Notes under the pieces: model-generated | The model's input: only the letters and a program-made list of their open reading frames with translations | What the model was told of the DNA's origin: nothing | Database searches by the model: none | Shown here: positions 43,700-47,926 of the stretch, one piece after another | Layout of the letters: every line of letters starts with the position of its first letter | Position numbering within the stretch: position 1 is the stretch's first letter | Origin: Oikopleura dioica | Taxonomy: Eukaryota > Animalia > Chordata | DNA length: 64,000 nt | Direction of reading: 5' to 3' | Assembly: GCA_907165135.1 (NCBI GenBank) | Contig: OU015569.1 | Coordinates: 8,184,001 to 8,248,000 of the forward strand | Position numbers and translations under genes: made by a program

Positions 43700-44740
43700 G
43701 ATTAAACTCTAGTTGGCGCGCGCTGATGGTGCAGCGCCACCATCGTTACCTGCGAACGCATTGATATAGCCACCGTTGGCAATAGATCACCAGCAGTAGC
43801 TTTTTTGAGAGACCTAATGAAGATACTATTTTCGCTCCCATTTGCTTTCGCGGAACCCGTTCTTCACAGAGTCACGAGGTATTAGAAAAGAAGCTTCCGA
43901 GAAAGTAAATGCGTGTGTTTTTAAGAGATAGCAATGCTAGTGTAGAGCCAGAAGCCGGTAGGCTGGAAGTAGGCACTGGAGGGGAAGATCGTCGATACGT
44001 CCAACTTGTAGATCAGATCAAATACTTCAATCCAGCTTTTGATCACAGAAAATTCTGGGCGTATGGTTGCAATTGTCTGCTTTTAGGTACGAGAGACAAT
44101 AAAAAGTATATCCTTATCAATATTTCAGGAGACCGACCGATGTCTGATCCAGGTTGGGGTCCACCCATCGACGCTCTGGACACAGTTTGCAAACATTATA
44201 AGGTATCGCGGTGCAAGAGTCGCAGTATTTTACATTTGAATTAAGGATTGTGCTCAATGTGCCAAAAAGAAGCATGGGGAGATGTGCATTAATGAATTTG
44301 TGAGATATAAATACAGTAAAACGTAAGTCAGGACCATAAACGAAATAAGTTTACAAAAATCTAGTCAATACGCGAACGGAAACTCGATGTGCAGAGACGC
44401 GCCTAATTCTTGTGCGAGAGATCTATGTGAATGCGATTTTGCCTTTGCAAAAGCACACTACCCAGCAATAGATGTTTTCAATTATGACTATCATCTCTTC
44501 TGGACAACCACGAATTGGTATCCCGAAGATAACTGTCCACAACCGCCCGGCTCTGTTCCAGTTGCACCTCAATGCTGTTATTCTCTTACTGGCCCAGCTG
44601 TGATTTACAATAGGAAGGGATTAACTTTTTCATAAATTATAAATATCATTCTTCGATCAATATTGATCATAAATAAAGTAATCCCTATGAGCCTTACTCA
44701 TACGTGCGATGCATCTGGTGCTATAACGAAAAATGAATAA
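43700..44740 (+). CDS. Secreted phospholipase A2-fold protein, catalytic His-Asp lost
   Basis: AYGCNC...GPPIDALDTVCKHYKDCAQC, CARDLCECDFAFAK, and a Cys-rich tail (PQCC). Start and end approximate. Confidence 0.75.
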
Positions 44741-45179
44741 TCTGCGAAATATAAACTTGTATATTTTTAAAAAGACGGTATATGACAGACAGTTTGATAA
44801 CTATCCGACACAACGAGAACTTAAATAGCTGGCATGATCGTATAGTTATCCAATTACTCTGCTCATAAGTTGAAAATTAACGATTTTAGCGATCCTTCTC
44901 TGACGATTCATTCTCACATGTATGAAAAGAAATAATTTTGAACAGAAATGTTCAACTGGCTCTCTGGTCTGAGCGAATTGCAACATTTCTTGTTAAAATG
45001 AACAAAGTAATATCAAATTTCAATCTGATAGTACCACTTATGATATACAACTTTGGCCGTCTATAAAGCCTGACTGTAAATAAACAAAATTATCATATGC
45101 ATCGATGTGTGTTTCTTTTATTAGTATCTATTTAAGGTCAAATTGTAGCCCATGAACTGTGATTAGTTTAGTGATGAGT

Positions 45180-47183
45180 CTATTCATGCTGCAAGATGTG
45201 CCATTTTTGGTTATCGCCACCGTGGCGAGGATAAGTACCGATGTGGACGCCAATATCTTCGGATGCGTAGGGAATGTCAAGTACATTTCCTTGATTAAAA
45301 AGATAGTTCGATTTGTATCTTAAAACTTTTGATTGATGGGGGACAGGAGTAAGGAAATACTAACCTCCATAGCTGGCTTACTTTGTCTTCCTCAAACGCT
45401 TTCAAGAAGAGGTTATCTGGCCCAGCGTCTCCTTCAACATCAAGGACACAATCTTTTGAATAACGATAAATTCAAATTTTGAGTATCAAGTCTAAACCTG
45501 GATTTGCCACAGAAGCGATGAGTGCAAGTTTTGTCGATGGATCGTACGAAATGTTCCATAGCTGGCTCTCTTCTTCAAGCCATTCATCTTGCACTACCTA
45601 AATTTTCTTTATTTGACTAGTAATAATTCTAATAAACTAACCGCTCCATCTTCTTCGCCCCCAGGAATGGTCAACACATGTCCAGAAAGTTCAGACATGA
45701 TGTACACATTTTCTAATGTAACGCCTGCCTTCATTTTGTCCTAAAACTTGAAGTTTCAAATATCTGTGATCATGAAAGGATGTAGTCACCTGAATACTGG
45801 CTCCGTCATCAACTTCTGGTGCTTCCTCTTCTTCTTCCTCCTCATCTTCTTCATCTTCAGCATCTTCCATTTCGGGCGTCCATTCCTCTGCACATCCATT
45901 CCCACGGACGACGGCTTTGAGCAATTCCTTCGCGTCACCTCGGAATCCTTTTTTGATGGCTTTGATTAAAGTGTAGCCAGCTTCTTCGAGGAATGTCTCA
46001 TTCACTTGCTCCAAGCAAGTCTAGAACAATCATTACAAATGCCAGAACATACCCCCATTTCTCTACCTCTGAAGTGTTGACAATGTGCCTAATCATTGTT
46101 TCCTCGTCCGTTCCTACGCCCTTCAACGCTTTTTGAATGGTCCGGGCGTAGTAATAAGCAGGGTGAGCTGCAAGTCGCACGATTGCTTTGTACCCCTTTC
46201 TCAAGTCGCGCGAGCATTCAGACTCAATAGCGGATTCGAGACTATTGCCAGCGATTTCTTCATACGCGGCAATAATCGCCCGCAATTGAAGAAGAGATCG
46301 TCGAGCAAAAATGAGGGTAAAAACAGACTCATCAGTTCCCCATCGGTCTTCGCCAGCCTCGTAGAGTTCCTGGGCGTCTGCTTGCGCGGCATCTTCGTCA
46401 ACTTCATCTGATTCTTCTCTTTGCGCCATGAGAACAGCCACAAGAAGTCGTTTGAAGTCTCCACGAGTGTCCGACTCAATGTCGGACTCAAGATCTCGAC
46501 CAAAAACTTCTGAGTAGGTTTCCTTGATTTCTTCGAGCTGCTCATTCGATTTCGTGCAGATGATTTCAATAAGTGCTTCTTCGTCCGTCCCAAGTCCTTT
46601 CATCGCTTTTCTGAGCTCTCGAGCGGCGTACTCTGCTGGTGGCCGCATCAAAGCTACAATTTTTCATCGAAACAAATTCATCGAGAAAATAGTGTCTTTT
46701 GAGATCACTCTTACTGAAAATACCTTTTAAACTACGGCGAAGATCATCTCGTCGAATTTTGTCCATTCGTTTGATCAAATCCTCGCCATAACATCCTTTA
46801 TAACGATTTTATTACTACTCTCGTGTTCAAATTTGTACACGAATGTATAAAACCACATTCCTTTGTATATGTCGGCAAGCTCCTGGCGCTGAGCATTATT
46901 GAGTTTCGTCACGATAGCGATGATTTTCTCCTCGTTGATTCCAATGCGCTCTAATTTAAATAAATAAATTACATAAAGTTAATTTTAGGTTCTTACTATG
47001 GAATGCTTTGTGAATCGCCTTAGCTTCAGTTTCGGCATCAAAGTCGGGAAATTCTCCGATGGTTCCCTAAAAGATTTATAAAAAAATCTTCCTCGAAGAT
47101 TGAAGAAAATCCAAAATAGTAATTTTTTATGTAAATACCTTGAAAGTGAGGCCACAAGCGAAATTCGAGCTAGAATTTCCCAT
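45180..47183 (-). CDS. Annexin with N-terminal MGNSSS, four-repeat core, acidic linker and C-terminal ricin-B lectin domain
   Basis: MKGLGTDEEALIEII, RWGTDESVF, LKGVGTDEETMIRHI; then EDAEDEEDEEEEEEE; then three subdomains ending QLW, QLW and NQKW; stop at 45180. Confidence 0.9.
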
Positions 47184-47926
47184 TTCGGATAAATTTTATG
47201 ATGATCTCTTTTGGATGATCGAATGCACGAAATAATGGCCGTATGCGTAGGGCTGCACGACAAAGGTAATATTTAATCTGTGAGTGAGAAAAAAGCGCAA
47301 ATTGAATCGTATGATAATAGGAAATCATTCTCATTCGCATACTCACTCTTCGTCTATTTTGTTTTGATGATTTTAAGAAATAAGACAGCTTAAATACTCA
47401 CTTATGAAATATATTTTATGCACAAAATAAAAGGGGCAGCTAAAAAACAACAACACAGAAATAATGATATCAAAGTGGTTACAGCTGCTCGAAAATTGCG
47501 TAGCGCCGTTGCTAAACAATTTTTTTTTATTTTCGGTTTTCACGAAATCGACGAAATGGAAATTTCGCCGGTAAACTACAATCGCGGACGGGCGAATTCT
47601 AGGTTTATTGAATTTGAAAAGAGTGCCTGCAGTAATTTTACTTCAAGAGATGGGATTGACCACGACACGAGTGCGAGCCCCGAAGACGACTTTCTCCAAC
47701 GCAACGGAAAACTAATTGCAACCACTGGCTTCAGCGCCGCTTTGTTTGCACAGAATGCAACAGATTTAGGGCTACTTCAATAGCATTTGCGATTTACTTT
47801 TTCCCTTTTTCTTTTAAACCTTTCCCGGAAGTAGCCCTGGATAGAACTTGGCGATAACATCAGGCGGCTTCAAGTTTGCTATAAATTACGATTGATAACG
47901 TGCGAGACTGACTGGTTTGTCGCTAG

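Follow-up and report, generated by a model that had tools for sequence, protein, structure and literature searches.

By the usual description, annexins differ from one another only at the N-terminus. They act in membrane repair, and galectins sense exposed glycans. In a window of 64,000 nucleotides of Oikopleura dioica (contig OU015569.1 of assembly GCA_907165135.1, forward-strand positions 8,184,001 to 8,248,000; all positions given here are those of the window unless another location is named), a gene on the minus strand, from 47183 to 45180, encodes an annexin that is continued at its C-terminus by a ricin-type lectin. It is virtually certain that this is one gene with a single mRNA, which encodes a 506-aa protein without a signal peptide composed of an ANXA13-like core, an acidic linker and an R-type beta-trefoil with a canonical gamma sugar site, and that the fusion arose once in appendicularians, from a duplicated ANXA13-like gene, and is kept under strong purifying selection.

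Explicit splicing of the genomic DNA gave 10 exons, which encode the 506 residues and end at a TAG stop codon (45182-45180). The nine introns have 44-72 nt each, eight of them GT-AG and one (intron 3) GA-AG. Built only from the DNA, the model has 100% identity with the public protein CAG5098478.1 (P0287 in our numbering; Oidioi.mRNA.OKI2018_I69.XSR.g15704.t1.cds). An earlier note on this DNA had proposed that annexin repeat 4 continues through an acidic linker into four phase-compatible lectin exons, and the spliced model encodes the peptides quoted there. The exon limits given in that note were right in placing every element and needed shifts of 3-10 bases (45790 and not about 45780, 45642 and not 45650, 45498 and not 45490, 45365 and not 45370, 45318 and not 45315). 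Both families were found in the same polypeptide above the curated Pfam cut-offs: P0287 matches Annexin (PF00191) with 216.4 bits in four stretches (cut-off 25), Ricin_B_lectin (PF00652) with 32.5 bits (cut-off 29) over positions 3-126 of a profile of 126, and RicinB_lectin_2 (PF14200) with 39.6 bits (cut-off 25.6). The lectin domain alone scores 36.6 bits with PF00652 and 45.0 bits with PF14200.

Evidence from RNA was obtained by comparing positions 44700-47700 with two metatranscriptome contig sets from independent studies (X1 and X2) and two raw-read runs (X12 and X13). Contigs 95-100% identical to the window join the exons across introns 3, 4, 6, 7, 8 and 9. Exact joints were found for intron 9 in both sets, for introns 8, 7, 4 and 3 in X2 and for intron 6 in X1. 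This last joint (45740|45790), between exons 6 and 7, connects the end of repeat 4 and the linker to the first lectin exon, and is carried by record 2 of X1 with 0 mismatches and a depth of 4. The repeat-4 exon is therefore linked to the lectin exons by RNA contig joints, and transcripts continue past 45740, as the earlier note had anticipated. Without splicing, the annexin frame would read through intron 6 and end inside exon 7 (open reading frame 45691-46014). The X12 and X13 runs, which have the same species label, show eight reads each on the locus with 90-95% identity, which places them in a divergent cryptic lineage, in line with the deeply separated cryptic species reported within O. 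dioica, and makes them poor evidence for the OKI2018_I69 assembly. Their loose ends at 46067 correspond, with few changes, to the reverse complement of the start of exon 6, which indicates the splice of exon 5 to exon 6 (intron 5).

The same fused protein is found in other lineages. A 1,688-nt metatranscriptome contig of the Joint Genome Institute (JGI), L004, belongs to a sister lineage, lacks all nine introns and encodes P0155, a protein of 505 aa which is 93% identical to the window protein overall and 89% in the lectin domain. P0287 and the second public model, P0288, both sit in the cluster of this near-identical protein. Nucleotides 25-87 of L004 align with window positions 47312-47250 (89% identity), which sets the minimum extent of the 5' untranslated region (UTR) at 47184-47312 on the minus strand. 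Since this 5' UTR follows the genomic sequence without a break, the annexin-lectin mRNA does not start with a spliced leader. Fused proteins of other clusters are 65-69% identical to the window protein: P0152 (514 aa; merc, with JGI and Logan members), P0157 (504 aa; Logan) and P0158 (partial; JGI). Full-length fused proteins are present in at least three lineages and four data sources, and P0155, P0152, P0157 and P0158 likewise pass the Pfam cut-offs for Annexin and the ricin-type families. Furthermore, in two genomic sequences of the P0152-type lineage, L002 and L006 (10.9 kb), a single uninterrupted exon corresponds to exons 3-7 and encodes repeats 1-4, the linker and the first lectin strands, followed by an in-frame 48-nt intron and then by the remaining lectin exons and the stop. 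The junction lies within a single exon and has no acceptor at that point, and therefore no separate lectin cistron starts there in that relative. Intron positions have turned over across lineages while the fused frame stayed conserved.

The lectin half is encoded by exons 7 to 10, all on the minus strand. Exon 7 (45642-45740), with an ATG 6 nt after its acceptor, encodes the first strands of the alpha subdomain of the beta-trefoil. Exon 8 (45498-45597), joined in record 9 of X2, encodes the remainder of alpha and the beginning of beta. Exon 9 (45365-45452), joined in X1 and X2, encodes the beta subdomain, and exon 10 (45180-45318) the gamma subdomain and the stop. Searched singly against Pfam, exons 7, 8 and 9 gave no signal, and among the lectin exons only exon 10 matched (PF14200, E=3.2e-4; PF00652, E=5.1e-3). 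The three QxW subdomains that had been read from the DNA are in place, with (QxW)3 motifs QLW at aa 410, QLW at aa 458 and QKW at aa 498. The minimum 3' UTR (45115-45179, minus strand) contains an AATAAA at 45122-45117, and record 1 of X1 covers 45115-45318.

The fold predicted for this half is a beta-trefoil, as the earlier note had expected. AlphaFold2 modeled the lectin domain of P0155 with a mean predicted local distance difference test (pLDDT) of 94.2 and a predicted template-modelling score (pTM) of 0.89, as twelve strands in three lobes. A Foldseek search of PDB with this model returned, as top matches, only R-type/CBM13 trefoils, including the C-terminal half of the lectin EW29 (EW29Ch) with lactose or N-acetylgalactosamine (GalNAc) at template-modelling (TM) scores of 0.73-0.83. 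A profile of the family lectin domains compared with PDB sequences gave ThreeFoil (1.4e-15), the C-half of EW29 over its full length (1e-8) and CEL-III (1e-6). The model of full-length P0155 shows a helical core (26-327), disordered segments at 1-11 and 339-356 (pLDDT < 50) and a trefoil (363-505), and its pTM of 0.64 indicates that the domains have no fixed orientation to each other. A feature search of the ESM Atlas with the full protein gave no usable match.

The roles of the sugar-site residues of R-type lectins (an Asp, a stacking aromatic and Asn-Gln before xW) are known from ricin B and EW29. The gamma site of the window protein shows the full canonical pattern (LDI ... HIGTY ... GGDNQKW) and aligns with the gamma site of the EW29 C-half; the pattern Asp...His/Tyr...Asn-Gln-x-Trp claimed for this third subdomain is thus confirmed. 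At the alpha site Thr stands for Asp and Ser for Asn, and at the beta site the Asp is kept and Ser-Gln replaces Asn-Gln. The canonical site differs by lineage: it is alpha in P0157, where gamma is degenerate, both alpha and gamma in P0158, and gamma only in P0152 and the O. dioica forms. Every member keeps at least one complete sugar site, with alpha and gamma complementary between lineages, as expected if sugar binding were selected. The lectin domain of the O. dioica forms contains only one or two Cys, and an N-x-S sequon (NIS) is found at aa 413-415.

The annexin half is encoded by exons 1 to 6, also on the minus strand. Exon 1 (47139-47183) contains the start codon and aa 1-15 (MGNSSSNFACGLTFK). 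The N-terminus MGNSSSNFAC, with Cys at position 10, agrees with that read in the earlier note and fits the N-myristoyltransferase consensus (Gly2, a small or uncharged residue 3, Ser6), a predicted acylation site. The MGN start is common to the fused and canonical appendicularian relatives, mouse ANXA13 and Styela ANXA13. No signal peptide or hydrophobic leader was found in the sequence of the window protein. Exon 2 (46997-47066) encodes an N-terminal segment and the beginning of repeat 1, and its counterpart is followed by an intron in the loci of the relatives L002, L003 and L006. Exon 3 (46861-46950) carries repeat 1, whose Ca2+ loop, KRIGINE, is degenerate (Pfam Annexin E=1.6e-4 for the exon alone), and exon 4 (46724-46795), with X2 contig joints at both sides, ends this repeat. 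Exon 5 (46067-46653) encodes repeats 2 and 3 and the beginning of repeat 4 (Pfam Annexin E=8.9e-50, three stretches). Exon 6 (45790-46020) encodes the end of repeat 4 (aa 289-332; Pfam Annexin E=1.2e-3), the EEWTPE motif and the poly-acidic linker (aa 333-365), whose composition is conserved across lineages.

The only non-canonical intron is intron 3 (46796-46860, minus strand), a GA-AG intron of 65 nt with a 6-nt direct repeat, AAAGGA, on its flanks. The X2 contig joint is ambiguous by these 6 nt, and an AG acceptor is obtained only in the GA..AG placement. The spliced product across the intron, IYKGCYGEDL, is the same in P0155 and P0287, and the position is intron-less in the relatives L002, L003 and L006. 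GA-AG introns are enriched in O. dioica (PMC7072748), and the OKI2018_I69 assembly has a median intron length of 49 bp and 11% non-canonical introns (PMC8008620).

Type II Ca2+ sites were recognized by a GxGT loop and an acidic cap about 39 residues downstream. These sites are complete in repeat 2 (KGLGTDE, cap Asp154) and repeat 3 (GEDRWGTDE, cap Glu). The repeat 1 loop is degenerate in every appendicularian member, whether fused or canonical. In repeat 4 the loop is intact (KGVGTDE) and the acidic cap is replaced by Gly313; all fused members show Gly or Asn at this position. The cap region (aa 309-317; exon 6, about 45950-45980) has Asp or Glu in most canonical annexins. A conserved EEWTPE motif precedes the poly-acidic linker. 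The lost repeat-4 cap and the EEWTPE motif may be regulatory features of the annexin-lectin junction. Canonical annexins had been said to end right after repeat 4, and the canonical relatives do so, 0-6 residues past the annexin core, while the window protein adds about 175 residues of linker and lectin.

Comparison of the window coding sequence with the L004 cDNA gave nonsynonymous divergences (dN) of 0.024 for the annexin, 0.061 for the lectin and 0.105 for the linker, with proportions of synonymous differences (pS) of 0.69-0.88, at which synonymous sites are saturated. On these substitution patterns both halves are under strong purifying selection. The same genome contains a canonical paralogue at C1:14239695-14240303 (L005), of the P0163 type, with 334 aa and an MG start, which ends right after repeat 4; it is about 65-70% identical to the annexin half and has no lectin. 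No paralogue of the last lectin exon was found in the genome.

A maximum-likelihood tree was built on the annexin core alone, with echinoderm and Styela A13-like sequences and with vertebrate ANXA13 as outgroup. All nine lectin-bearing rows fall in one clade (support 100/99), nested among canonical appendicularian MG-annexins, and the echinoderm, Styela and vertebrate ANXA13 sequences lie outside the appendicularian group, which the tree joins with the Styela and echinoderm A13-like sequences. This topology places the origin of the fusion in a single event within the appendicularian ANXA13-like expansion. Four unlabelled rows also fall inside the fused clade: two are truncated fragments (P0156 and P0166), and two are long-branched metatranscriptome proteins with a canonical end (P0160 and P0165), which may reflect secondary loss of the lectin or misplacement in the tree. 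The annexin half is best described as ANXA13-like, an assignment that follows mainly from the ranking of homologues, with the tree confined to this annexin subfamily.

No lectin donor was identified in the genome, where the other ricin-type modules reach 24-31% identity at best. The closest of them is a Cys-poor module on the same contig (L007, C2:10723323-10723691), inside an open reading frame of 2,108 aa, with 13.6 bits, and this weak relative suggests repeated shuffling of Cys-poor ricin-type modules. A profile search found no close stand-alone lectin relative, and its matches were mostly genomic fragments. A word-index search with the P0155 lectin region returned only P0155 and P0266 and missed known family members. 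P0266 (Logan, sister lineage), of 316 aa, begins with about 145 unrelated residues that run into the last part of repeat 4; a shortened linker and the lectin domain of the family follow. No counterpart of the unrelated residues was found in the genome, and the protein is probably an assembly chimera; it was not used as evidence, although it could alternatively represent a second transcript or gene of the sister lineage.

The architecture suggests a function that we put forward tentatively, as a possibility: the protein would act as a membrane-tethered cytosolic glycan reader, for instance at ruptured membranes. The myristoyl group and the Ca2+-bound annexin core would anchor it at the cytosolic membrane leaflet. 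The lectin, on a flexible Glu/Asp tether of about 30 residues, would have access to ligands only if glycans of the lumen or of the cell exterior come to face the cytosol. Where the plasma membrane or an endolysosomal membrane ruptures, the protein would then serve as a coincidence detector and bridge, responding to Ca2+ influx together with exposed galactosides, and one chain would unite annexin repair and galectin damage sensing, which are separate in vertebrates. The MG start, the absence of a hydrophobic leader, the disordered N-terminus and the one or two Cys of the lectin are consistent with a cytosolic topology. The further step, that appendicularians use this chain as a rupture detector, in which the annexin binds the torn bilayer and the lectin captures the exposed glycans, and which patches, clusters or flags damaged membranes, is rather unlikely. 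Taken as a whole, the architecture together with the membrane-tethered glycan reader comes close to an even chance of being right, slightly on the lower side. The lipid anchoring, the Ca2+-dependent binding, the glycan binding and the roles in damage sensing, apical sorting or house secretion that had been suggested for the protein stay predictions.

Several points weigh against this explanation. The structure models are those of the orthologue P0155 and not of the window protein, and in the lineage of the window the joint between exons 6 and 7 is carried by one contig, with 24 nt counted up to the masked acidic repeat. With a degenerate alpha site and a partial beta site, the window protein would have low avidity unless it is oligomerised on membranes. 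Ca2+ affinity may be atypical, with the repeat 1 site and the repeat 4 cap lost. Glycan binding, Ca2+/lipid binding and myristoylation are predicted from motifs. A minor, trans-spliced, lectin-only isoform starting from the ATG 6 nt into exon 7 is compatible with the low read depth. In addition, a genome search with the galectin profile PF00337 gave no match, and its controls were equally silent, which makes it uninformative on galectin loss.

Operons and spliced-leader (SL) trans-splicing are common in O. dioica, and the lectin exons could in principle be a separate downstream cistron, trans-spliced at the exon 7 acceptor and translated from the ATG 6 nt further on, in which case the fused model would be an artefact. 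Record 9 of X2 does not discriminate here, as it stops only 7 nt past the 5' end of exon 7. However, the cis-joint of exons 6 and 7 in the X1 contig, the full-length fused cDNA contig L004, the fused proteins from at least three lineages and four sources, the junction inside one exon of L002 and L006, the end of the unspliced annexin frame inside exon 7 and the absence of loose SL-like ends at 45740, at low read depth, all argue for the fused gene, and make a separate cistron extremely improbable. As the main product it is ruled out by the X1 joint, L004 and the single-exon junction of L002 and L006.

Two other functions were weighed against the membrane-tethered cytosolic reader. The protein could act outside the cell, which it would leave, as several annexins do, through unconventional secretion or in vesicles. 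There the annexin would bind exposed acidic lipids in seawater Ca2+, and glycoproteins of the surface or the house that bear galactose would be cross-linked by the lectin, with a part in apical delivery, house assembly or pathogen agglutination. The usual ligands of R-type lectins are extracellular, and among solved structures the nearest relative is EW29, an animal lectin that binds galactose. The annexin part resembles ANXA13, of which the form ANXA13b has a link to apical carriers; externalisation of annexins is known, and the NIS sequon points in the same direction. However, there is no signal peptide, the myristoylation consensus points to the cytosolic leaflet, the lectin domain has very few Cys, and none of the papers found to name both Oikopleura and annexin deals with the house, its proteins or this protein. 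We regard an extracellular role as unlikely. Alternatively, the trefoil could have been re-used for another ligand, such as a cytosol-facing glycolipid (e.g. glucosylceramide), a phosphoinositide, actin or another protein, which would make the protein an ordinary adaptor in trafficking or in the cytoskeleton. The functions of beta-trefoils are diverse, as fascin, hisactophilin and MIR domains show. The degenerate alpha and beta sites and the cytosolic character predicted for the protein are compatible with such a change, as is the functional diversity of the fold (PMC12225799). However, the domain belongs by sequence to the sugar-binding R-type/CBM13 family and not merely to the fold, and the Asp, the aromatic and the Asn-Gln are kept in at least one subdomain per lineage, alpha or gamma in a complementary way, which is hard to explain without selection on a sugar site. 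This second alternative is quite unlikely, and a cytosolic glycan reader, as a rupture detector or bridge, is the function we prefer as the most economical one.

The surroundings of the gene were also inspected. A divergently oriented neighbouring gene (47418-47783, plus strand) begins about 235 nt from the annexin ATG and contains a GT-AG intron (47601-47645) with an X1 contig joint. Two Cys-rich open reading frames on the plus strand (43909-44244 and 44387-44635) are convergent with the 3' end of the annexin-lectin gene. Pfam gave no match for the 47418-47783 exon or for the frames at 43909-44244 and 44387-44635. The public model name (g15704) assigns the gene to 'XSR', which we take to mean X-specific region, and the annexin-lectin gene appears to be X-linked.

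Under a name that tells little, the gene has been public ever since the first release of the genome. The second public model, CBY13814.1 (UniRef E4XVU6, P0288), from the Bergen assembly, differs from the window protein at 31 of 506 positions and carries the automatic name 'Ricin B lectin domain-containing protein'. The earlier note knew of no characterisation of this architecture. No paper describing the annexin-ricin-B architecture or citing these accessions was found, in a search covering few subscription journals, and occurrence counts in two recent surveys of beta-trefoil and ricin-B/CBM13 architectures gave zero mentions of annexin; two public O. dioica gene models nevertheless already carry it. 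The annexin-ricin-B fusion is thus already in public gene catalogues, yet uncharacterised in the searched literature, and the value of the present analysis lies in recognising the architecture, its conservation and the predictions that it allows, and not in gene discovery. Among annexins, a C-terminal lectin that is conserved and under selection is out of the ordinary, and the fusion joins two modules that normally work on opposite faces of the membrane, a Ca2+/lipid binder of the cytosol and a reader of glycans. Should the lectin prove active, the protein would be a natural experiment in the sensing of lost membrane integrity, or in annexin action after externalisation, and a compact probe design reporting Ca2+, lipid and glycan together would be possible. 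The gene is also an example of the domain shuffling that Cys-poor ricin-type modules undergo in the rapidly evolving genome of Oikopleura.

Among known systems, ANXA13 is the counterpart of the annexin half. The four-repeat core, the MGN start and the position in an MG-initiated A13-like clade of the tree are shared, and among named homologues annexin A13 or A13-like proteins come closest, with about 45-50% identity. ANXA13 and the canonical appendicularian paralogues, however, end a few residues after repeat 4, where the window protein adds the EEWTPE motif, the acidic linker and the lectin; it further differs from ANXA13 in the degenerate Ca2+ loop of repeat 1 and in a repeat 4 without acidic cap.

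For the lectin half, EW29Ch (PDB 2zqn, 2zqo and 2rst) is the best natural match by profile (E=1e-8) as well as by fold (TM 0.73-0.83). It also has few cysteines, and its gamma motif is nearly superimposable (VLDI ... G.HI ... HGG.NQK). In contrast, EW29 is a stand-alone tandem lectin with no membrane-binding module; identity is about 22%, and the alpha site of the window protein lacks the Asp and the Asn. The fungal nucleocytoplasmic ricin-B lectins SSA (2x2s), RSA (4g9m), MPL (4izx) and MOA (6yh0) are likewise R-type trefoils without a signal peptide (TM 0.72-0.80), but they occur alone or with a protease or dimerisation domain attached, act in defence against predators, and none of them is joined to an annexin. 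Prokaryotic CBM13 modules of glycoside hydrolases and lyases share family and fold (ESM Atlas TM 0.85-0.87), and no annexin partner was found among the ESM Atlas shape matches of the lectin domain. The CBM13 trefoil targets a secreted enzyme to polysaccharide, whereas the partner of the trefoil in the window protein is predicted to be a cytosolic membrane binder.

Finally, galectins 3, 8 and 9 may be considered a functional analogue only. Pfam gives only Annexin and ricin-type families in the window protein, with no match to PF00337. Galectins have the beta-sandwich of that family and carry neither a lipid anchor nor a Ca2+ module, in contrast to the beta-trefoil of the window protein. They are cytosolic galactoside lectins without a signal peptide, which encounter glycans only once membranes rupture, and it is the same logic, a lectin that waits in the cytosol for glycans, that we propose the annexin-lectin of O. 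dioica may follow.

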